Sequence record: NC_034623.1
Strand: one strand, 5' to 3'
DNA: 36,493 nt
Below the pieces are notes generated by a model that was given only the letters and a program-made list of their open reading frames with translations, made no database searches and had not been told where the DNA came from. Numbering within the stretch: position 1 is the first letter of the stretch; each line of letters opens with the position of its first letter. The position numbers and the translations under genes are program-made. Shown here one piece after another: positions 8,599 through 22,929 of the stretch.

Positions 8599-8669
8599 AA
8601 TTTTAGATATTTTAGAATACTATAAAAAGATGACATATACATTTAAATGTCAGGTTTTCAATTGCATAT

Positions 8670-9014
8670 GTGAATTGTGAAAAAGTTTTCATTTATCATT
8701 TTCTTTACAATTATACATATTTTGTTACTATTGCTACAAATTATCGCTATAATGATACGATAAAAATCTATAAAAAATTTCGGCAATATATTTATAATCA
8801 TGATAAAAATTCTCATTTATTTAGCGTAAAAGAGTATACAACAAAATTTCATGGTCTACATTATCATGTTTTAGTTTTCACGAATAAACGACTTGATTAT
8901 TCTAGAGTTCATAAACATATGCCTCCACATTCAGATATCAGAATTGAATTAGTTCCAAAAACAAAAAAAGATATAAAAAAAGTTTTAGCTTATATGACTA
9001 AATCTAAAAAATAG
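8670..9014 (+). CDS. rep: HUH-superfamily Rep initiator/nickase (SIRV1 ORF119 / SIRV2 gp16-like)
   Basis: Motif 1 YFVTIAT, HUH motif GLHYHVLVF, catalytic YMTK; GTG start. Confidence 0.95.
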   Translation: MNCEKVFIYHFLYNYTYFVTIATNYRYNDTIKIYKKFRQYIYNHDKNSHLFSVKEYTTKFHGLHYHVLVFTNKRLDYSRVHKHMPPHSDIRIELVPKTKKDIKKVLAYMTKSKK

Positions 9015-9015
9015 A

Positions 9016-9303
9016 TTATTTACTTTGTGACTGTTGCTGAGAACTTTGCTTTTTCTGTGCTAATGCATTTACATCTGAAAGAGTATCCATATTCAATAAT
9101 GCATTAATTCCAAGAGTTGTAGTATCTTTTATACTCTCTACTGCCGAAATTGTAGATTTTGTCATTTGATCGACTGCTATTTGGAATGATTCATTTGCTT
9201 GCTTTTGATTGTAGAGATATACTATTTCTCCAACTACATATGATCCTATTAAAACTCCCATTAATACTAGAAATCCTTCAATTGCATATTGTATTGTTGA
9301 CAT
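9016..9303 (-). CDS. pvap: PVAP, virus-associated pyramid egress protein (SIRV2 P98 / STIV C92 family)
   Basis: N-terminal TM then GEIVYLYNQKQANESF..IDQ-like..KDTTTLGINALLNMDTL, matching the recalled P98 sequence. Confidence 0.93.
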   Translation of the reverse strand: MSTIQYAIEGFLVLMGVLIGSYVVGEIVYLYNQKQANESFQIAVDQMTKSTISAVESIKDTTTLGINALLNMDTLSDVNALAQKKQSSQQQSQSK

Positions 9304-9401
9304 TTCAATTTTATTATATGCAAATTACTTAGTAATAAAGTTTATGCAAAAAATCGAAATATATAAATATGTCATAATGTTCATTTATAAAATGAGGAAA
9401 A

Positions 9402-9563
9402 ATGATGGAGAAAGGGAAACCTGAAAGAGTTGTATTTGGAATTAATATAGATAAAGAATTAAAGAGAAAATTAAAAGTATATTGTGCAAATAATGGCATA
9501 ACATTAACTGAAGCTATAGAACAAGCATTGGAAGAATATCTACAAAAGAGGCAACCAAAATGA
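9402..9563 (+). CDS. svtR: SvtR-like RHH transcriptional regulator (53 aa)
   Basis: Translated by hand: [53 protein letters not shown], matching SIRV1 ORF56b SvtR ([25 protein letters not shown]). Confidence 0.88.
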
Positions 9564-9706
9564 GAGTAATAACAGTAAAAATTGAAGAAGATCTTTTGCA
9601 AAAACTTGATAAATATGCTATGAATCATAAATTAAACAGATCTGAAGTAATTAGGCAAGCGCTAATGGAATTCTTGAGACCAAATACTACAACATATGAT
9701 AGTTAA
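9560..9706 (+). CDS. CopG-like RHH protein (48 aa)
   Basis: Translated by hand: [39 protein letters not shown]...; ATGA overlap with the svtR-like gene. Confidence 0.88.
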
Positions 9707-10538: not shown

Positions 10539-10850
10539 TTAAAGAATTTCACCTTGTTCAGTTTTATCGACTTTACCACAAATTACAGTAATATTAAACA
10601 TATTTCTATTATATCTCCAATTTACTTTTATTAATTCTGGTCGTCTGAAAGTTTTAATTATATAATTTACAATTCCTAGACCTCTTTTTTCATAAAATTT
10701 TATTGTTACATTCATTATAATTTTTATAGTTACTAAGTTTTCATCTTCTAAAACTAAATAATCATAAACATTATCAGAGTAACGATTTTTTAACCATTTA
10801 AAAATTTGAACTACATATTTTCTACATTCATATTTGACAAGATCATTCAT
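10539..10850 (-). CDS. Hypothetical 103-aa protein
   Basis: ORF with an upstream ttaaattgtc promoter-like motif. Confidence 0.7.
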   Translation of the reverse strand: MNDLVKYECRKYVVQIFKWLKNRYSDNVYDYLVLEDENLVTIKIIMNVTIKFYEKRGLGIVNYIIKTFRRPELIKVNWRYNRNMFNITVICGKVDKTEQGEIL

Positions 10851-10968
10851 ATTTTAAATTTCATGATCTGACAATTTAATAGTTTTTTTAAAAATAGAAG
10901 ATAGTATATTAGATGATTAATAATTCTCTTAATTATTGTAGTATTTTAGTTTAAAATCTTGTCAACTC

Positions 10969-10990
10969 ATATACATAATATAATGTATAT
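10969..10990. promoter_or_regulatory. Palindromic element upstream of MCP, distal copy
   Basis: atatacataatataatgtatat; 60 bp upstream of the proximal copy. Confidence 0.7.
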
Positions 10991-11028
10991 AGCTTTGGTT
11001 TTGAATTTTACGCCAATTTCATCAACTT

Positions 11029-11048
11029 ATATACATTATATAGTATAT
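11029..11048 (+). promoter_or_regulatory. Palindromic element upstream of MCP, proximal copy
   Basis: atatacattatatagtatat; starts 32 bp before TTTATAT (11061). Confidence 0.7.
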
Positions 11049-11098
11049 ACGGCGTGAAAATTTATATTGTAGCAATTTTAAATATTAATTGACCAAAA

Positions 11099-11503
11099 AT
11101 GGCAAAAGGAAGAACACCAAGATCCTATAGTCAAAGGTATGCAAAATGGTCAGCTAAATTTGCATCATTTTCAAATCCTACCGTAGCATCTACTATATTA
11201 TCAAATGTTGCACCAGTTGCACAACAAAATTTCCAAACAAATGTTCCAAAATTTACTAGCGTAAATGAACAAGTTTCTAGCGTATTGTCAGAATATGGAA
11301 TTACTGGTCCTAACAGAGCCATTTACCAAGGCTTTGGTTTGAAGGTAGCTAGAGCGCTTAATAGGTTGGGAGGAGGGCCAGCACTTGTTAACATGATAAA
11401 TGGTTTGAAAGCATATTATATTTCAGCATTTAATGCTAATCCTACAGTATTAGATGCAGTTACTAATATAATTACTGGATCTCCAACTGGATATGTAAGC
11501 TAA
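11099..11503 (+). CDS. mcp: Rudiviral major capsid protein (134 aa)
   Basis: MAKGRTPRSYSQRYAKW...GITGPNRAIYQGFGLKVARALNRLGGGPAL...AFNANP, the hallmark SIRV coat protein. Confidence 0.98.
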   Translation: MAKGRTPRSYSQRYAKWSAKFASFSNPTVASTILSNVAPVAQQNFQTNVPKFTSVNEQVSSVLSEYGITGPNRAIYQGFGLKVARALNRLGGGPALVNMINGLKAYYISAFNANPTVLDAVTNIITGSPTGYVS

Positions 11504-11560
11504 AAAATTATAGAATATCTTTTAAGCTATTTTATTTTTTTATTTTTTCTTTTTCAGAAC
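11504..11560 (+). terminator. T-rich terminator after MCP
   Basis: Long oligo-T tract at ~11530-11556. Confidence 0.55.
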
Positions 11561-11614
11561 TTTAGTTCAAATTTAAAATTTTAAAAAAATCACTTTTAAC
11601 TTTTTAACTTGAAA

Positions 11615-11785
11615 TTAATCATTATCATCAATTTTTGTTTCTATATACTCATAATTTGTTTTACTTATTCTTTTACAATCACTAATTTTTACATTAGGAT
11701 GATGTTTTTTCAAATGTGTAATCATAGCTTTTCTAGTTCTCGTTAAATGTTGACAAATTGGACACTCGAACAAAAAGACGCCCAT
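11615..11785 (-). CDS. C2H2 zinc-finger protein (~56 aa)
   Basis: FECPICQHLTRTRKAMITHLKKHH; ATG 11785 preferred because tttatttgtc lies upstream at ~11803-11813. Confidence 0.85.
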   Translation of the reverse strand: MGVFLFECPICQHLTRTRKAMITHLKKHHPNVKISDCKRISKTNYEYIETKIDDND

Positions 11786-11821
11786 GATATTTTTTAATGT
11801 CATGACAAATAAAAAATTCAC

Positions 11822-12829
11822 ATGAAAACTACAATTTTGACCATGAACTATTCCTCAATTCGTAATGTTTCAGAGGATATTGCACAAGTTTTACGAAAAA
11901 ATGGAGAAATTGTAACAATTTCAACAAATCCATATTTAATTCCACAATCTGATAAATTAATAATTTTTATGCCTTTCCATCCACCATCTCTAAATCCATA
12001 TTTGTATGCATTTAGAGAATTTAAAGGTAAGAAGTATTTTTATACAACTTGTGATGGTTTACCTAATACAAATATTGTAAATCAATATCTATTAGAAAAT
12101 ATAATATTTATTCCAAATTCAAAGTTTACAGCTCAAAATCTTCAAGAAGTTGGTCTTCAAACTGATCTTCCAGTTTTCCACGGTATAAATTTTGAAATTG
12201 TAGAAAAAGCTGAAAAATTAGCTATTCAATTAAAGCAAAAGCTGGATAAAGATTTTCCAAATTCCATAAAATTTGGAATTGTAAGTGGTTTAACTAAAAG
12301 AAAAAATATGGATCTTATGATAAGAGTTTTCCAAGAAATAAATACTAAAATTCCAGAATTAGCCAAGAAAATCCATTTCTTTGTAATTTCTCATAAAGCA
12401 TTTAAAGATTTTGAAGTTCCTGAAAATGTACATTTTGTTAGCGAATTTGGACTAAATCCAAGAGAATATATTTATGCATTCTATCGCTCCATGGATTATA
12501 TGATAGTTCCTTCTGGAACTGAGGGCTTTGGACTTCCAGTTTTAGAAAGCATGGCCATGGGAACGCCGGTCATTCATCAACTTATGGCACCGTTTGATGA
12601 ATTTACCTCATGGCAGTGGAACCTTTTGATTAAATCTTCAGAAGTTGAAGAATATTATGATAAAACGCATGGGCAAAAATGGAAAATTCATAAATTTGAT
12701 ATTCATGACATGATAAATGCAATATTAATAGCTTCAGAACTTCAAGATAGAGATGAGAGAAATAAAAATTTAAGAGAGTTAGCAAGAAAATATAATATAG
12801 AAAATTTATATGTCAGATTTTTAGAGTGA
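11822..12829 (+). CDS. GT-B (GT4) glycosyltransferase (ORF335-like)
   Basis: RKNMD, VPSGTEGFGLPVLESMAMGTPVI. Confidence 0.95.
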   Translation: MKTTILTMNYSSIRNVSEDIAQVLRKNGEIVTISTNPYLIPQSDKLIIFMPFHPPSLNPYLYAFREFKGKKYFYTTCDGLPNTNIVNQYLLENIIFIPNSKFTAQNLQEVGLQTDLPVFHGINFEIVEKAEKLAIQLKQKLDKDFPNSIKFGIVSGLTKRKNMDLMIRVFQEINTKIPELAKKIHFFVISHKAFKDFEVPENVHFVSEFGLNPREYIYAFYRSMDYMIVPSGTEGFGLPVLESMAMGTPVIHQLMAPFDEFTSWQWNLLIKSSEVEEYYDKTHGQKWKIHKFDIHDMINAILIASELQDRDERNKNLRELARKYNIENLYVRFLE

Positions 12830-12892
12830 CTTCAAGAGCTGATTAATCGAAAAATTTATATGCTTTATATGATATATAATTATAGTGAGAGT

Positions 12893-13018
12893 ATGGAGGA
12901 AGTAATAATTGAATGTAAAGGTCTTACAAAGTTTCATGTAAAGAAAAAGAAAGGTATACAAATTAAAAATATAATAAATATGTGCAAAGATTATGGCTTG
13001 GAAGTGAAGGTGTATTAA
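12893..13018 (+). CDS. 41-aa small basic protein
   Basis: Translated by hand: MEEVIIECKGLTKFHVKKKKGIQIKNIINMCKDYGLEVKVY; upstream TATA (aaaatttatatg) and 3-bp gap to the next ORF. Confidence 0.55.
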   Translation: MEEVIIECKGLTKFHVKKKKGIQIKNIINMCKDYGLEVKVY

Positions 13019-13021
13019 AAA

Positions 13022-13321
13022 ATGCCAAAATTCTATTATTGCTTTTTATGTAAAACTACACTTGTTGGGAAAAAAGAATTCAAAAAACATGCACAGATAC
13101 ACTTTAAAAATAATAGATGTCCATATTGCAATATGAAAACTAAAAATTTATCAATACATTTAGCATATTATCATTTACAATTTAGAAGAAAAGCAGTCTT
13201 ATTAAGGGATTTAGCAATATTGTGCAAGGAAGCAAATACTACAAATATTCTTCATGATAAAGATTTAAAAATTGATAATTACATCAAATTCAATATACAA
13301 AGAATGATGAAAAAGTTATAA
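13022..13321 (+). CDS. Double C2H2 zinc-finger protein (99 aa)
   Basis: CFLC..HAQIH and CPYC..HLAYYH. Confidence 0.85.
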   Translation: MPKFYYCFLCKTTLVGKKEFKKHAQIHFKNNRCPYCNMKTKNLSIHLAYYHLQFRRKAVLLRDLAILCKEANTTNILHDKDLKIDNYIKFNIQRMMKKL

Positions 13322-13397
13322 TTCTTTTTTTTAATACTATTTCTTTTGTCGAATGCTTTATATCTGTCATATTACATGTTTTTATTTACGTGAAAAA

Positions 13398-13598
13398 ATG
13401 GTAAACAAAATAGACATAATAAAAATTCACATATTATCTAAATTAGAATATGAATTAATAAATGAAATAGTACAGAATAAAGAATTTGATGATAAAGACA
13501 TAGTTGATATTTTAATGTTAATAAAAAATATTTTAAATGAAATTGATACGACTTTAACAATTTTAATAAGAACAACACAAAAAAATAACAATTTATAA
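13398..13598 (+). CDS. Hypothetical helical protein (~66 aa)
   Basis: ATG 13398 after a gtga SD-like motif; leucine-rich. Confidence 0.6.
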   Translation: MVNKIDIIKIHILSKLEYELINEIVQNKEFDDKDIVDILMLIKNILNEIDTTLTILIRTTQKNNNL

Positions 13599-13614
13599 AC
13601 TTAGAGGTGTTAAA

Positions 13615-13938
13615 ATGGAGATTATAAAAGATTATGCTTTAGATAATTTAGATATAATGATAATTTTATCTATAGGGAAAAAAGGAAATTCAAGTAAAAA
13701 AATTCATGAAACAGTTATAGAACTTTCGAAATTATTAAATATAAAAATTGATTGTATTGATAATTATTGTGAAGATGTTGCAGAAAGGATAAATTCTCCA
13801 TCAAGAATTCCATTTTGGATTAAGGTCAATTATAGATATAGATTGAACAAATTAGGAAGAATAGCATATGATATAATAATAGAAAAACTAAAAGAGAAAA
13901 AAAGAGAAGATATGTTAAAAATATTAGAAAAACTTTAG
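13615..13938 (+). CDS. 107-aa protein, possible winged helix
   Basis: gaggtg SD; LDNLDIMIILSI...YRYRLNKLGRIAY resembles a wHTH wing. Confidence 0.7.
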   Translation: MEIIKDYALDNLDIMIILSIGKKGNSSKKIHETVIELSKLLNIKIDCIDNYCEDVAERINSPSRIPFWIKVNYRYRLNKLGRIAYDIIIEKLKEKKREDMLKILEKL

Positions 13939-14156
13939 CTCAATTTCTTTTTTATTTCTTCAATTTGTTGTTTTAATTCATTCTGATTTATTTTCAACTC
14001 TTCAATTTCTATTTTTAAATTTTGTAGTTCTGAATTAACTATTTCTTTAACTGCGTCTCTTAATGCATTCTTAATTTTTAAATAAAGTTGAACAATTGCA
14101 AATAATGTAGTTACAAATGTTGAAATTATAGTTAAAACAAGTGTATACTCACTCAT
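13935..14156 (-). CDS. 73-aa N-terminal TM plus coiled-coil protein
   Basis: Hydrophobic N-terminus and heptad C-terminus; overlaps the upstream ORF. Confidence 0.75.
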   Translation of the reverse strand: MSEYTLVLTIISTFVTTLFAIVQLYLKIKNALRDAVKEIVNSELQNLKIEIEELKINQNELKQQIEEIKKKLS

Positions 14157-17800: not shown

Positions 17801-17872
17801 ATATCATCAATATAAAAATTTTTATATGACAAATTTAAACATATATATGTCATAATTTTTAAGTTTAATTTG

Positions 17873-18256
17873 ATGAATTTTAGACAATCTGGAAAATATT
17901 ATGAATATAAGACACTTAATTATCTTGAAAAACATGGATACAAAGCTATAAGAATTCCAGTTTCTGGAACTGGAAAACAGCCAATTCCAGATATTATAGC
18001 AACTAAGGATAATACAATTTTTCCAATTGAAGTTAAATCAACTTCACAAAATTATGTTGTAGTTGATAATTTTCAAATTGATAAATTGTTTAAGTTCTGT
18101 GAGATATTCAATTTTTGTAATTGTAAACCGTTAATACTAGTTCATTATAAAAAATATAAAAATGTCATAATATATAATTTGAGTCAAGATGTCAGAACAA
18201 AAGAAAAAATCAAATTTACCTTCAGAGCTAACAGCAAAACTGTATTTAGCACTTGA
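17873..18256 (+). CDS. hjc: Holliday junction resolvase (archaeal Hjc family)
   Basis: GKYYEYKT, RIPVSG, PDIIA, IEVKST. Confidence 0.95.
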   Translation: MNFRQSGKYYEYKTLNYLEKHGYKAIRIPVSGTGKQPIPDIIATKDNTIFPIEVKSTSQNYVVVDNFQIDKLFKFCEIFNFCNCKPLILVHYKKYKNVIIYNLSQDVRTKEKIKFTFRANSKTVFST

Positions 18257-18812: not shown

Positions 18813-21800
18813 ATGAGTTTCTTATTAAATCTTGGAGATTTAGGTACATTTTTTTCAGATGAGCTAACAGCATTAGAGAATTTTGCAAATTTCTTAAGCT
18901 CTGATTTTATAAACTTTTTTAGTGCAGTAGTTAATGATATTGAAAATGTTGTAAGTTTCATAGGTCAGGCAATTAGTGATATTCCAACTTTTATGCAAAA
19001 AATTGCTAACAATTTCTTGACGATTTTGCAAAACTTTGTACAAACTGCAATTCCAGTAGTTTCAGGATTTTTAACATTTCTTGAACAACAAATTATAAAT
19101 GTATTTCAAGATTTGTCTTCTTTAGCTTCTACATTTATTAATGATGCATATTCATTTTTACAAGGTGTTGTAAATGCATTTGCAAATTTAATAAGTACAA
19201 TAGTTCAAGATTTTCTAAATAATTTTGGTCAAAATATGAAACATATTAGTTCTGCAATTTCTCAAGTTACTCAATTTTTAACTCCATTTATCGCTCCAGT
19301 CACTTTAGGAAAATTTTTGCCAGCAATAATAGATAAATTAGCTGAAATTTTGCCAGAAGTTGAAATTGATTTAGCGCCAGTTGGCTTAGGCGGAAAAATT
19401 CCAATTAACTTTGGAGAAATTGTAAAAGCGTTTGCTGAAACTTCAGTTGACTTTTTAAATGAAGTAAGAGTAGAAATACAAACTACGCTTAAGGAGTTTA
19501 TAAAAGAGCCATTTATTTCAGATTTTAAAATTACTGCGAGAGAAATATTTAATGAAATTGGTCTTGGTGATTTGCCATTTGCAGATCCTCCATTTAGATT
19601 AATTGCAAATTGGGTCGGTTCAAGATCATTTTCTGAAATTAAAGACCATCTTAAAGAAACAATTCTATTGACTGGATTTCCAGCATGGTTTACTGATGCT
19701 TATCTAGAATCTCCAGTTGATGATTTTATTCCAAGAAATCCGTTATTTAGACCAGTAAATATAAGAGATGTAATTTTAGCTTCACAATATGGAATTTTAG
19801 ACTTTAGTGCAGTTTCTCAATATGCAGAAAATAATTTAATAACTCCAAAAACTGCAAAATTAATGTATCAAAATGAGACTGCGAGACTTTTACAAAGAGC
19901 AGTTGAAGAGGGAATTAGACAATTTGTAGTTACTCCTGAAAAAGCTTATCAAGAAATAATACAAAATGTTAATTTAGCAGGTAAAGATTTATATCTAAAA
20001 GTTTTCTCTTTGGAGTATAATTATGCAGTTCAAAGAATTGTAAGACAATTCTTAAGATCACTTTTGAGCAGAGCATTAACGAATTTTGGAAGACCTTATA
20101 TAGATTTAAAATTCCTAGAATCAACAGTTCAAAAATTATTTCAAGAACTAAATTATCCTGAAGAAGTTCAAAATGTTTTCAACATAATGATTGAACAATC
20201 TCAAATAGTTTATACTAATCAATTACTTTTGACACAATTAGAACAACTTACCAGATTAGGAATATTTGACGAAAAGAAAGTAAAAGCAGAGTTAAAAGCT
20301 AATAACTTTAATGAACAGATAGCACTTACAATTTTGAATTATGAACTTCAATATGTACAATTACAATATATCTTGAAACAATACCAATTCATGTTACAAA
20401 ATTATATTATTAGTACAAAAGATGCAGAAAATCAATTAAAGAAATTAGGCTTTGATTCATCTATAATTTCTGAGATAATTTTTGAATATCAAACAGCTCC
20501 ATTAACAAAATATCAAATTAGCCAAATTGAAAGTTTGGCTAGAAAAGGATATTTATCAGTTGATGAAATTAAAAAACAATTACATTCATTAGGCATAATT
20601 AAGGAATTTGAAGACATATTTATCAATTACACAAGTCAAGAAATTCAAATATCAACAACTTTAAGTATTGTAAAAGAACAATTAAGAAACTTCCTAATAG
20701 ATTCGAAAACTGTAGAAAATGAATTAAAAGCATTAAAAATTAATGATTATTTAATAAATGAGATAATTCAAGAAGAATATAACATAAATATATCTAAATT
20801 ACAATTATCATATTTAGAAACTTTAGCTAAGAATTTATATTATGATCAAAATCAATTAGCCGGAGAATTAGCAAAAATTCTAAAAGATAAAACTGCAATA
20901 GATCTTTATACTCAAAAATTCTATTATGAATATGTATTTCCAAAAATTGTCAGTTATCACGTTAGTTTAGCAAGACATGGAATTTCCTCAAATATTTCAA
21001 ACTTGCCAAAAGAAATTGTAGATTATGAAATTAATCCAGAAATCCAAATTTTCCAACTTACAACAGAATTAGAATATATAAAATCATTATTAAAAGATTT
21101 ACAAATAACTCCAACAAATGCTGAAAACGAGTTAATAAAATTAGGAATGCAAAAAGATTTAGCTAATTTATTTGTGCAAACTTATATTCCAACACTTTAC
21201 AGTTTACATACAATTATTGGAAATATTATAGAAGGTCAACTTTACAAAGTCGGAAAAATTCCAATTAATTTAGGAAATGCAGAACAACAATTAAGACAAT
21301 TAGAAATTCCAGAGAACCAAATTAAAGTTTTACTAGATCAATATGCCTCCAGTTTTGGCTTAGAAATTTGGAGAAAATACTTACCTTCACTTTCTCAAAT
21401 TGAAACTGCAATAAAATATAACTTTCCAATTAACCAATTAGTTGAATATTCATTTATACCATCTGAATTTCTTAACTTATATTCTAATTTATATCAATAT
21501 GAATTAATTGGACAATATGTACAATCTTTGAGAAATGAATATATTCAACTTCTCACTTATGGAGTTCAAAATATACAATTAGAGAATTTGCTAAAACAAT
21601 ATGGAATAAATCAAGTCCTATTAGAAGTTTTCAAATTATCAGCACAAATTAGAAAATTATTAATGGCTTATCAAGAACTTTACATCACTCCATCTAAAGC
21701 ACTCACAATTAGCGAATATATTAGCAATCCAAATCAACTTTTACAAAAAGTATTTTCCGAATTTCAAGTACCAACAGATTTACAAAATACTTACTTAGAA

Positions 21801-21989
21801 TATGCAAGAAATAGGAGACTTAGAACGTACGTAAATGAAATAATTTCAACAATCAATTTGTTATTTGAAAGACAAAAAATAGATCTAAATACGGCTCAAC
21901 AATACTTACAACAATTAAAACAATATGGTTTAACAAATGAAGAAATTCAATTAATCTTACTTAACTGGCAATTAAGAAGTAACTATTAA
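18813..21989 (+). CDS. Large virion terminal-fibre/end-structure protein (SIRV2 ORF1070/gp38-like)
   Basis: 1058 aa; amphipathic helical N-terminus and repeated I(S/T)xxxAxxxLxxLG units. Confidence 0.9.
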   Translation: MSFLLNLGDLGTFFSDELTALENFANFLSSDFINFFSAVVNDIENVVSFIGQAISDIPTFMQKIANNFLTILQNFVQTAIPVVSGFLTFLEQQIINVFQDLSSLASTFINDAYSFLQGVVNAFANLISTIVQDFLNNFGQNMKHISSAISQVTQFLTPFIAPVTLGKFLPAIIDKLAEILPEVEIDLAPVGLGGKIPINFGEIVKAFAETSVDFLNEVRVEIQTTLKEFIKEPFISDFKITAREIFNEIGLGDLPFADPPFRLIANWVGSRSFSEIKDHLKETILLTGFPAWFTDAYLESPVDDFIPRNPLFRPVNIRDVILASQYGILDFSAVSQYAENNLITPKTAKLMYQNETARLLQRAVEEGIRQFVVTPEKAYQEIIQNVNLAGKDLYLKVFSLEYNYAVQRIVRQFLRSLLSRALTNFGRPYIDLKFLESTVQKLFQELNYPEEVQNVFNIMIEQSQIVYTNQLLLTQLEQLTRLGIFDEKKVKAELKANNFNEQIALTILNYELQYVQLQYILKQYQFMLQNYIISTKDAENQLKKLGFDSSIISEIIFEYQTAPLTKYQISQIESLARKGYLSVDEIKKQLHSLGIIKEFEDIFINYTSQEIQISTTLSIVKEQLRNFLIDSKTVENELKALKINDYLINEIIQEEYNINISKLQLSYLETLAKNLYYDQNQLAGELAKILKDKTAIDLYTQKFYYEYVFPKIVSYHVSLARHGISSNISNLPKEIVDYEINPEIQIFQLTTELEYIKSLLKDLQITPTNAENELIKLGMQKDLANLFVQTYIPTLYSLHTIIGNIIEGQLYKVGKIPINLGNAEQQLRQLEIPENQIKVLLDQYASSFGLEIWRKYLPSLSQIETAIKYNFPINQLVEYSFIPSEFLNLYSNLYQYELIGQYVQSLRNEYIQLLTYGVQNIQLENLLKQYGINQVLLEVFKLSAQIRKLLMAYQELYITPSKALTISEYISNPNQLLQKVFSEFQVPTDLQNTYLEYARNRRLRTYVNEIISTINLLFERQKIDLNTAQQYLQQLKQYGLTNEEIQLILLNWQLRSNY

Positions 21990-22032
21990 ACAACTAAATA
22001 AATAAATTTGTCACATTTTTAAACTAGAAATT

Positions 22033-22848
22033 ATGAGCGTTAATTTATGTCATTATGAGGCGGAAAATATAAGTTATAAAGATTTAGAAAATCTTCAAGG
22101 TATGATATATTATGAGATAAAATATGATGGAACACATATTTGTTTAAAGTATGAAAATGAACTAAAAATTAATACTAGAAAAGATATACCTCATGATAAA
22201 ACATTTCAGAATTTGTTTTATCAAGTTCCAAATATTGATGAAATTATAAAATATATAAAAGAACATAACAATTATATAATACATGGGGAACTTATACATA
22301 AAAAGACATCAGCATTACAGATTCACAAAAATGAAACTCCGGAATTTATCATATATGATGTCTTTGACAAAGAAAATAATAGATATTTAAATCCATTTGA
22401 AGTTGATAGTGAAATTTACGAATGGTATCCAGAAATTTGTTTAGATTTAGATGATTTACTTGATATTATAACTAAAGAAAAACTTGAGGGCTTAGTAGCT
22501 AAAATCTATAATCCGAAATTTGCAAATTGTGAAGAAGGCAGAAATTTTAACATGTGTCTTTTCAAATACAAACCATATTTTTCAACTTTAGGAGTAATAT
22601 TTAAACCAATTAGGAGAGAAATTGATGTTAGACAATTAGCGTTTCTTCTCGGCGAAATAGATAATGATTTAAAGAATAATAAAGATGAATGGTATAGAAA
22701 TCATCCAGAACTTTACAAGTTCTTTATCGAAAATAAAGATAAAATAATACAGATACTACAAAACGAAAACTTCATATTACAAATTGAAGAAAATACACAT
22801 TTAGACATTAAGAAAATTAAAGAATATATTACAAATTTCAAAAGATAA
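22033..22848 (+). CDS. ATP-dependent polynucleotide ligase (nucleotidyltransferase domain, RNA-ligase-like)
   Basis: Motif I EIKYDGTH, Ia TRK, III IHGEL, IIIa FIIYDVFD, IV EGLVAK, V FKYKP, in the correct order; no obvious OB domain. Confidence 0.88.
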   Translation: MSVNLCHYEAENISYKDLENLQGMIYYEIKYDGTHICLKYENELKINTRKDIPHDKTFQNLFYQVPNIDEIIKYIKEHNNYIIHGELIHKKTSALQIHKNETPEFIIYDVFDKENNRYLNPFEVDSEIYEWYPEICLDLDDLLDIITKEKLEGLVAKIYNPKFANCEEGRNFNMCLFKYKPYFSTLGVIFKPIRREIDVRQLAFLLGEIDNDLKNNKDEWYRNHPELYKFFIENKDKIIQILQNENFILQIEENTHLDIKKIKEYITNFKR

Positions 22849-22866
22849 CAACATTTAGACCAAGCC

Positions 22867-22888
22867 ATATACATAATATTATGTATAA
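22867..22888. promoter_or_regulatory. Palindromic late-type element
   Basis: atatacataatattatgtataa (inner 20 bp a perfect palindrome); starts 32 bp before TTTATTTC at 22899. Confidence 0.8.
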
Positions 22889-22929
22889 GCTATGTGTGTT
22901 TATTTCTGTCAAGTTAATAATTTTTTCAT

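Follow-up and report, generated by a model that had tools for sequence, protein, structure and literature searches.

The window analyzed here, a stretch of 36,493 bases, has the same sequence as the genome record of Sulfolobus islandicus rod-shaped virus 8 (SIRV8; KY744229.1 / NC_034623.1), an archaeal virus (Usarudivirus) originating from the Norris Geyser Basin, Yellowstone. Its gene ORF43 (ARQ96449.1; 22033..22848, plus strand) encodes a protein of 271 amino acids (32.8 kDa, pI 5.4), in which we recognized a covalent nucleotidyltransferase of the RNA-ligase type. On balance, ORF43 is probably a functional ATP-dependent polynucleotide ligase of the RNA branch, consisting of a nucleotidyltransferase (NTase) domain (residues 1–181) and a helical domain (residues 182–271), expressed from its own promoter and serving the virus as an optional fitness gene that joins or repairs RNA ends. 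The coding sequence is shorter at both ends than the span of 22010–22866 assigned to this element in a first-pass annotation of the same DNA.

The nucleotidyltransferase motifs of ORF43 are conserved

Conservation was read from two alignments, one of the family (19 sequences, with relatives 66–91% identical) and one of 38 sequences, in which relatives at 20–26% identity were added to the family. The adenylyltransferase domain (22033..22575, plus strand) was recognized from its match to the Pfam family PF09414, from the NTase-type β-strand core of an AlphaFold2 (AF2) model, and from Foldseek searches. All six motifs of the covalent nucleotidyltransferase superfamily were present in canonical order, invariant or nearly so, and all lie on the plus strand. 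Motif I, KYDGTH (22120..22137; KYDG being residues 30–33), holds the predicted AMP-accepting lysine, K30, which together with G33 is invariant in the 38 sequences. It is followed by motif Ia (T48-R49 of TRKD, residues 48–51; 22174..22179), which is invariant in the SIRV family and whose R49 is conserved at 90% or more in the 38-sequence alignment, and by motif III, HGEL (residues 84–87; 22282..22293), whose E86 is invariant in every alignment, distant relatives included. In motif IIIa, FIIYDVFD (F105, Y108, D109, and F111; YDVFD being residues 108–112; 22345..22368), F105 and D109 are invariant across the 38 sequences. The same holds for E152, G153, and K157 of motif IV, EGLVAK (residues 152–157; 22486..22503), and in motif V, FKYKP (residues 177–181; 22561..22575), K178, Y179, K180, and P181 are invariant in our alignment A8.

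Position by position, K30, G33, T48, R49, G85, E86, L87, Y108, D109, F111, E152, G153, K157, and K178 were invariant in the 19-sequence alignment, as was H35 of KYDGTH, and D32 and K180 were conserved at 90% or more. After the addition of the relatives at 20–26% identity, K30, G33, E86, F105, D109, E152, G153, and K157 were still invariant. The motifs that the first-pass annotation had listed (KYDG, TR, GEL, YDVFD, EGLVAK, and KYK) can all be read directly from the ORF43 translation. Its further remark that motif I lacks the arginine of the DNA-ligase form KxDGxR also holds, as KYDGER of human LIG3 aligned opposite KYDGTH of SIRV8. When the profile was widened with distant relatives, motif I of ORF43 aligned with motif I (KvDGyN) of solved Rnl3-type ligases. 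By transfer through profile alignments, K178 would equate to K238, the motif V lysine of PpaRnl (PMC11040149), the Rnl3 enzyme of Palaeococcus pacificus.

Besides the motifs, C6, C37, C166, and C175 were invariant in 19/19 close relatives, whereas P0039, a distant homologue, has none of them. Between motifs IV and V, a conserved insert (CxEGxNFNxC) is bordered by C166 and C175, and the invariant cysteines could form stabilizing disulfides or a metal site.

Family and fold searches favor the RNA-ligase branch

The Pfam model RNA_ligase (PF09414) matched SIRV8 ORF43 with 43.2 bits against a cutoff of 27 (E 6e-11; residues 27–167; model positions 5–162/171), and it scored above its gathering score in 19/19 family members, with a best E of 1.6e-12. 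PF01068 (DNA_ligase_A_M) reached 29.3 bits against a cutoff of 26.2, matching only residues 16–91, the region of motifs I–III. TIGR02779 and TIGR00574, the NCBIfam models for nonhomologous end joining (NHEJ) and the ATP-DNA-ligase N-terminus, gave about 20 bits against cutoffs of >200. PADLOC returned no match for ORF43, and its PHROGs family, phrog_12949, is listed as function unknown.

A first AF2 model from the shallow family alignment, with a predicted local distance difference test score (pLDDT) of 67 and a predicted template modeling score (pTM) of 0.45, was replaced by one from the 38-sequence alignment (pLDDT 90.3, pTM 0.80). The latter showed an NTase-type β-strand core to residue 179, then helices only, and contained no oligonucleotide/oligosaccharide-binding (OB) fold. 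When it was searched against the PDB with Foldseek, 66 matches were obtained at E≤1e-3, and all of the 50 listed were ligase NTase domains. Ranks 1–18 were RNA ligases, and the first DNA ligase, that of T4, stood at rank 19. The leaders were Rnl3 enzymes, namely Pab1020 (2VUG, E 2.2e-8), PpaRnl (entries beginning with 8UC), MthRnl (5D1O), and the Aquifex protein 3QWU, followed by T4 Rnl1, fungal Trl1-LIG, and Naegleria Rnl5. Among the viral structures of BFVD, most top matches after the SIRV11 orthologue were annotated as RNA ligase. Searches of PDB sequences with the single ORF43 protein or the close-family profile gave nothing meaningful. The widened profile matched chains of Rnl3, Rnl5, and T4 Rnl2 along the entire NTase domain (E 4.6e-12 to 4.5e-7), and its match to DNA ligase I was confined to the surroundings of motif I (E ~1e-4).

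A ligase domain is already recorded automatically for this gene, with labels that conflict. GenBank gives 'hypothetical protein' for SIRV8 ORF43, a supplementary table of 2017 gives 'DNA ligase domain', and UniProt gives 'RNA ligase domain-containing protein' for the SIRV5 and SIRV11 orthologues. The evidence presented here favors the RNA-ligase branch. The class put forward in the first-pass annotation, an RNA-ligase-like enzyme as opposed to an OB-containing DNA ligase or a capping enzyme, is borne out by the higher score of PF09414 than of PF01068, by Foldseek ranks 1–18, and by the helical C-terminus. The best structural match was Rnl3, neither an OB-containing DNA ligase nor an mRNA capping enzyme.

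A role on DNA is nevertheless conceivable, and we regard it as unlikely. In this case, ORF43 would seal nicks or RNA–DNA junctions (3ʹ-OH RNA primer/5ʹ-PO4 DNA), in the way that enzymes of the Rnl5 and Rnl2 types seal duplex nicks, during the strand-displacement, recombination-heavy replication of the linear hairpin-ended genome, or help to close the hairpin ends. The PF01068 score just over its cutoff and the weak NCBIfam matches would be in line with such a role, and Rnl5 is known to seal nicks with an RNA 3ʹ-OH strand on a DNA template (PMC7261155), as Rnl3 is known to be active on single-stranded DNA (ssDNA) too (PMC11040149, PMC4797309). However, the PF01068 match is limited to residues 16–91, and the NCBIfam scores are far under their cutoffs. 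Further, ORF43 lacks both the OB domain that all DNA ligases have (PMC7261155) and the arginine of KxDGxR, and 18 RNA ligases outrank the DNA ligases in the fold search. As SIRV2, V3, and V65 replicate without the gene, it is no core replication factor.

The C-terminal domain is all-helical and family-specific

The second domain of ORF43 (residues 182–271; 22576..22845, plus strand) is marked by the conserved block LGEIDNDL..K..W..NH..L..F...NK.KI. In the AF2 model, helices span residues 182–189, 199–214, 220–223, 225–243, 245–254, and 259–267, and no strand follows residue 179; the block-mean pLDDT is about 90 to residue 270, with 74 for the last residue. The prediction that the C-terminus of about 85 residues looks helical rather than like an OB fold is therefore in agreement with the model. 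When the domain alone was compared with Pfam and PDB sequences, only chance-level matches were found (a UBA domain at E 0.09; designed trefoil-knot proteins). An hhalign comparison with the C-termini of the nearest PF09414 relatives, whose motif I reads KRDGSN, gave an E of 0.12, which is not significant. Outside the ORF43 family, only two of the 1.84 billion representative proteins searched, P0039 and P0051, aligned into this domain. Whole-protein TM-scores were 0.43–0.51, and the NTase core makes up about two-thirds of ORF43; by our estimate, such scores are expected from superposition of the core alone, so they lend no support to a resemblance of the C-terminal domain to known flanking domains.

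ORF43 is an accessory cassette under purifying selection

A HMMER search of the same 1.84 billion proteins with the family profile gave 17 matches at E≤1e-3, comprising the ORF43 family, P0039 and P0051 (24–28% identity), and PF09414 proteins of about 280 amino acids with the KRDGSN motif I. P0039 (24% identity) aligned across both ORF43 domains. No cellular copy was found in pattern-seeded scans of one genome per species from 185,579 bacterial and archaeal species, which distant relatives could escape. A tblastn search of 50,697 records of phages and archaeal viruses detected the gene only in Yellowstone SIRVs, namely SIRV4–11 and the isolate record OM401713. The ORF43 family is confined to one archaeal-virus lineage and a few metagenomic sequences.

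In every gene-bearing locus, the ligase gene lies between the homologue of P1070 (gp30), the terminal (tail) fiber protein (PMC5569661), and the homologue of P564, a DUF2341 protein (ORF44 in SIRV8). Among the 21 IMG/VR loci that cover this junction, the ligase gene was present in 14 and missing from 7, one of the latter being SIRV2. The gene was also absent from the isolates V3 and V65, where about 90 bp separate the P1070 homologue from the P564 homologue and a palindrome described below comes next. Its absence from SIRV2, V3, V65, and the 7/21 loci indicates an accessory cassette, which is what had been proposed from the sequence, namely that ORF1070 and ORF564 are adjacent in SIRV2 (they are 121 bp apart there), that a ligase is no rudivirus core gene, and that the element is a self-contained cassette. 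A check of rudivirus distribution had also been suggested there, and the gene proved not to be universal; its position is fixed, its presence patchy, and its promoter conserved. Bautista et al. 2017 counted 30 core genes.

In a tree of the P1070 C-terminus, presence and absence of the ligase gene were clustered; about three changes are needed to explain the pattern, and the well-supported branches force only one. Two metagenomic loci without the ligase, L037 and L039, share the upstream-gene end '..RANY' and group with the ligase-bearing L038 (..RSNLS) instead of the main ligase-less clade ('..RSAY'), a placement that points to one or more independent, recent losses of the cassette. Flanking direct repeats were considered as a mark of insertion, and none was convincing. 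The GC content of ORF43 is 24.3% and that of the SIRV8 genome 25.1%, so the gene is not a recent foreign insert. Within ORF43, the GC skew is +0.10 to +0.15 versus −0.1 to −0.26 in both flanking virion genes (window 21800–22800), with GC at about 25% throughout. This switch probably reflects amino-acid composition, as a K/E/N-rich enzyme stands between Q/T/S-rich structural proteins.

All of the 18 gene copies compared were intact and full length. The pairwise dN/dS had a median of 0.16 and a range of 0.08–0.37 over 151 pairs, including those with dS >1; by this measure, ORF43 is under purifying selection. That the gene might be a decaying, nonfunctional remnant of a captured ligase gene is hardly credible. 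It is accessory, has been lost in several lineages, and has very few relatives anywhere, all of which would suit a remnant. However, the integrity of 18/18 copies, the dN/dS of 0.08–0.37 even at dS >1, the invariant catalytic motifs, the conserved promoter, and a GC content like that of the genome stand against decay.

The position of the gene also raises a ligation-independent role in virion assembly, parallel to that of T4 RNA ligase 1 (gp63), which doubles as a tail-fiber attachment factor. Every locus with the gene has it at the same place between two virion genes, the neighbor P1070/gp30 is a tail-fiber protein (PMC5569661), the BFVD matches include an 'RnlA RNA ligase and tail fiber attachment catalyst', and a distant relative, in locus L012, is also near a DUF2341 protein. 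Nevertheless, we consider such a role very unlikely. The ligase-less SIRV2, V3, and V65 make infectious virions, the invariant catalytic residues point to selection on catalysis, and the gene has its own promoter without operon coupling. Further, the DUF2341 neighborhood occurs in only 1/6 distant contexts, and T4 rnlB, the gene of T4 Rnl2, is also among virion genes with no such role annotated in its record. In the T4 record (L055), rnlB (8637–9641) is wedged between gene 24 (capsid vertex) and hoc; an RNA ligase embedded in a structural block is therefore not unusual, and the position says little about function.

The KRDGSN family (P0040–P0072), together with P0039 and P0051, contains the nearest sequence relatives of ORF43 (E 7.5e-8 to 1e-3). 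Its members resemble ORF43 in length, in being stand-alone viral genes, and in having a short, helical-looking C-terminal extension. They differ in that this C-terminal module reads LPxLPESEIxGAxDK...AMPLxAxYV..EC.KH.C, with no detectable homology to the SIRV C-terminal domain, and in that they come from uncultivated virus-like (tailed-virus) contigs, at least two with a terminase, and not from rudiviruses. KRDGSN ligase genes, each encoding a PF09414 protein of about 280 amino acids, were located in L011 (8001–8861), L012 (8001–8849), L052 (8001–8852), L053 (3406–4269), and L054 (1589–2419). An N6/N4 DNA methyltransferase gene lies near the ligase gene in L011 and L052. In L012, the ligase gene lies about 1.8 kb upstream of a gene for a 1174-residue DUF2341 protein (10629–14153), echoing the ligase–DUF2341 adjacency in SIRV8. 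This linkage was seen in L012 only and not in five other distant contexts, and is probably a coincidence.

ORF43 has a conserved promoter-like element

A promoter-like element lies at 21995..22012 (plus strand), upstream of ORF43, and consists of an A/T-rich TATA-like box (TAAATAAATAAATTT) directly followed by GTC. Its portion TAAATTTGTC, at 22003–22012, ends 21 nt before the ORF43 ATG. The core AAATTTGTC (AAATTCGTC in one locus) recurred in 17/17 ligase-bearing loci with its distance to the ATG unchanged; the element (T)AAATAAATTTGTCA ends about 21 nt before the ATG in each of them, and the flanks differ. When one mismatch or fewer was allowed, TAAATTTGTC occurred 35 times in the SIRV8 genome versus 15.4 expected, and 0/100 shuffles reached 35. 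Comparing motif positions with the annotation, we found the TATA+GTC motif 20–36 nt upstream of at least 16 other SIRV8 genes. According to Kessler 2004, as cited in PMC5569661, TATA+GTC is the SIRV promoter architecture. ORF43 thus very probably has its own promoter, and the distance of 21 nt to the ATG would imply a leaderless or near-leaderless mRNA. The first-pass annotation had likewise given the gene its own TATA+GTC promoter; the motif is indeed present and conserved, and lies about 10 nt further left than the 22012–22022 reported there.

In most relatives, the gene for the P1070 homologue terminates at a stop codon within the TATA box of the ligase gene (..AAC TAT TAA ATAAATTTGTC). SIRV8 has about 12 extra bases (AACAACTAAATA) between this stop codon and the TATA box (window 21987–22012, compared with L015–L029). 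In four loci (L019, L022, L024, and L027), the upstream open reading frame (ORF) continues across the promoter element and has ..RSNLSSS as its C-terminus.

On the right, the boundary of the cassette is marked by a 20-nt perfect palindrome with the halves TATACATAAT and ATTATGTATA (22868..22887), which lies outside the cassette, 43–62 nt upstream of the start of ORF44 (the P564/DUF2341 homologue); another TATA+GTC-like element (TTTATTTCTGTC, ~22896–22907) follows it after about 10 nt. The palindrome is also conserved in the ligase-less V65, V3, and SIRV2, and is probably a binding site for a regulator. A 'late operator' had been proposed after ORF43; a conserved palindrome is indeed there, and no evidence was found for its function or timing.

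Proposed mechanism and role of ORF43

Because the motif set is invariant, we infer for ORF43 the three-step ligase pathway described for Rnl5 and Rnl3 (PMC7261155, PMC11040149). K30 would attack the α-phosphate of ATP to form a ligase-(lysyl)-AMP, with E86 and the motif IIIa aromatics holding the adenosine, D32, E86, and E152 placing the catalytic metal, and K157, K178, and K180 contacting the phosphates. The AMP would then be transferred to a 5ʹ-PO4 end, and attack by a 3ʹ-OH end would seal the strand. Substrate binding is predicted to fall to the helical C-terminal domain, by analogy with the flanking domains of Rnl1–Rnl6. The NTase clade and the lack of an OB domain favor an RNA 3ʹ-OH substrate. 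Transcribed from its own TATA+GTC promoter, ORF43 would be a fitness gene that Yellowstone-type rudiviruses (Usarudivirus) carry optionally, outside core replication and virion building. Its product may join or repair RNA 3ʹ-OH/5ʹ-PO4 ends in the infected cell, with end-healing, if needed, supplied by the host.

Several points weigh against this proposal. Identity to characterized ligases is very low (12–20% in structural alignments), and TM-scores of about 0.5 reflect the NTase core alone. ORF43 is acidic (pI 5.4) and its C-terminal domain neutral (pI 6.95), which is unusual for a nucleic-acid clamp. As Rnl3-type enzymes adenylylate and circularize ssDNA too, the fold does not exclude a DNA substrate. 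Breaks generated in RNA by RNases and heat mostly have 2ʹ,3ʹ-cyclic-P/5ʹ-OH ends, which become substrates for a classic ligase only after a kinase and a phosphoesterase have acted; the RtcB pathway of the host could join such ends and would overlap with viral repair. Among the 42 SIRV8 proteins, a Pfam scan (E≤0.01) revealed no kinase, phosphatase, 2H (cyclic phosphodiesterase), or Hen1 family, although divergent small proteins could escape it, which agrees with the earlier impression that no kinase/phosphatase partner is evident. No end-healing partner was found beside the ligase genes of the distant relatives either, and SIRV8 has no tRNA genes and no Rfam family. Products of VapC-type toxins are reported to carry 5ʹ-OH ends (PMC6459853), so a classic 3ʹ-OH/5ʹ-PO4 ligase could not reseal them unaided. 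The alternative that VapC PIN toxins leave 5ʹ-PO4/3ʹ-OH ends, which would need no healing enzyme, was dropped in view of that report.

As no viral healing partner was detected and the breaks are mostly of the wrong end type, RNA-repair counter-defense would need host healing enzymes. Such a putative counter-defense role of ORF43, which the first-pass annotation had directed against host RNases of the VapC/HEPN or Csx1 type, is plausible. A bolder version, which we hold to be doubtful, is that ORF43 represents a seventh class of ATP-dependent RNA ligase, minimal, virus-only, and hyperthermophile-adapted, with a core derived from archaeal Rnl3 and a new helical domain for substrate binding, which would rejoin RNA cut during infection, for example by toxins or CRISPR-associated nucleases of the host, once host enzymes have healed the ends. 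If this were true, it would be the first RNA-repair counter-defense described for an archaeal virus. Ranking the roles, we place RNA end-joining or repair first, followed by the sealing of RNA-containing nicks in viral DNA replication, then by an Rnl3-like circularization or adenylylation, and last, as a long shot, by assembly in the manner of gp63.

Significance and side observations

In the literature searched, a rudivirus ligase was not discussed in any paper text, the supplementary-table entry being the only mention, and no characterized ligase from an archaeal virus was found. According to a review of 2023, all characterized thermophilic viral ligases are Rnl1 enzymes from bacteriophages (PMC10423840). 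ORF43 is a new architectural variant of a well-known kind of enzyme and brings no new principle. It is a naturally polymorphic accessory cassette in a culturable, genetically tractable pair, SIRV8 and Sulfolobus islandicus, and with natural ligase-less relatives (V3 and V65) at hand, the benefit of an RNA ligase to an archaeal virus is directly testable. Further, Rnl3 enzymes are being engineered for RNA ligation or adenylylation at high temperature (PMC11040149), and ORF43, a 33-kDa two-domain enzyme whose hot-spring virus infects a hyperthermophile, could serve the same applications.

Elsewhere in the window, an intact ORF of 128 amino acids with a TTG start (MMNFRQSGKYYEYK...) was found at 17870–18256 (plus strand), in the gap between ORF40 and ORF41, where the SIRV8 GenBank record has no coding sequence. 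At this position, syntenic metagenomic rudivirus loci have a gene for a 121-residue protein with Pfam PF01870 (Hjc Holliday-junction resolvase), and the position corresponds to SIRV2 ORF121.

Comparison with known ligases

Membership in the RNA-ligase families Rnl1–6 depends on which domain is joined to the NTase core (PMC7261155, PMC11040149). In ORF43, K30 is so near the N-terminus that neither the N-terminal domains of Rnl1 and Rnl3 nor the N-terminal OB domain of Rnl5 could be accommodated, and only 91 residues follow motif V, so the dimerization and C-terminal domains of Rnl3 cannot both fit.

The closest likeness is to Rnl3. These enzymes gave the best fold matches (E 2e-8 to 5e-7, TM ~0.5 normalized to the query) and the best sequence-profile matches; the motif set is the same, with a non-arginine residue after KxDG, and the spacing from motif I to motif V is 148 residues in ORF43 versus 146–149 in Rnl3 (PpaRnl K92–K238, MthRnl K97–K246). 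The SIRV8 host and the Rnl3 sources are all thermophiles, mostly archaeal (Pyrococcus abyssi Pab1020, Palaeococcus pacificus PpaRnl, Methanothermobacter MthRnl, and Aquifex 3QWU). However, Rnl3 has about 380 amino acids in four domains (N-terminal, NTase, dimerization, and C-terminal) and is a homodimer (PMC4797309). ORF43, with 271 residues, does not have this four-domain protomer: it lacks the N-terminal domain (K30 versus K92–K97) and carries one helical module of 90 residues without detectable sequence similarity to Rnl3, and structural identity is 13–18%.

The same comparison bears on the idea that ORF43 does not repair damage at all and instead circularizes or 5ʹ-adenylylates specific viral or host RNAs, for example to protect them from exonucleases. 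Rnl3 circularizes single-stranded RNA and accumulates AppRNA and AppDNA (PMC11040149, PMC4797309), and the fold matches, the sole sequence-profile hints, the motif spacing, and the thermophilic, mostly archaeal sources would all accord with it. We think this improbable, considering that ORF43 has about 25 residues before the NTase core and 91 after motif V versus about 135–140 in Rnl3, and that the RNA-binding residues of the MthRnl dimerization and C-terminal domains have no identifiable counterparts in ORF43. In addition, there is as yet no settled physiological role for Rnl3 itself (PMC4797309). Joining or repair of RNA ends remains our preferred role for ORF43.

T4 Rnl2 (rnlB) shares its general layout with ORF43. 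Both proteins belong to PF09414, both begin with the NTase domain (K30 versus K35) and continue into a helical C-terminal domain, which in the T4 enzyme has about 90 amino acids, and both are stand-alone viral accessory genes among virion genes. They differ in that motifs I and V of the T4 Rnl2 NTase domain (K35–K225) stand about 40 residues further apart, and Rnl2 ranked only 34th in the Foldseek search of the PDB with ORF43. The C-terminal domain PF18043 was present in all but one of the 120 T4 Rnl2 relatives listed, and no match to it was found at E≤10 in ORF43 or in its isolated C-terminal domain. An hhalign comparison of the ORF43 family with the T4 Rnl2 alignment yielded nothing, NTase domain included; with an effective number of sequences (Neff) of about 2 on both sides, its sensitivity is low, so this null result is uninformative and no sign of unrelatedness.

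Rnl5 (Naegleria gruberi NgrRnl and Deinococcus DraRnl) shares the PF09414-type NTase domain, with profile matches at E ~3e-10, and gave the tightest superposition on the ORF43 core (root-mean-square deviation (RMSD) 4.3–5.0 Å over about 200 columns, TM ~0.47). However, in Rnl5 an OB domain of about 126 amino acids precedes the NTase domain and no C-terminal domain follows it (PMC7261155), and the arrangement of ORF43 is the opposite, with about 25 residues before the NTase core and a C-terminal helical domain.

For Rnl1, in which an N-terminal extension and a C-terminal tRNA-recognition domain accompany the NTase domain, the NTase family PF09511 had no match in ORF43 at E≤10, and fold alignments had an RMSD of 15–16 Å. 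The position of the nucleophile lysine in T4 Rnl1 leaves an N-terminal extension, for which K30 of ORF43 leaves no room. The Rnl1 enzymes of the thermophilic phages RM378 (Rhodothermus) and TS2126 (Thermus; 'CircLigase') resemble ORF43 as virus-encoded thermostable RNA ligases, and RM378 was among the BFVD matches; they differ in family, in length (about 400 amino acids or more; 438 in RM378), and in coming from bacterial viruses that are only moderately thermophilic. Unlike Rnl4 (CthPnkp-Hen1) and Rnl6 (fungal Trl1), ORF43 is a stand-alone protein of 271 residues without fused kinase, phosphatase, or Hen1 modules. It differs from the phage RNA-repair system that pairs Rnl1 with Pnkp against anticodon nucleases, as a co-encoded end-healing enzyme was not detected in SIRV8, and from ATP-dependent DNA ligases, in all of which the NTase domain continues into an OB domain (PMC7261155), as it has neither this domain nor KxDGxR in motif I. 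The architecture of ORF43 fits none of Rnl1–6; it is an RNA-ligase NTase core closest to that of Rnl3, joined to a helical domain of an unrecognized kind.

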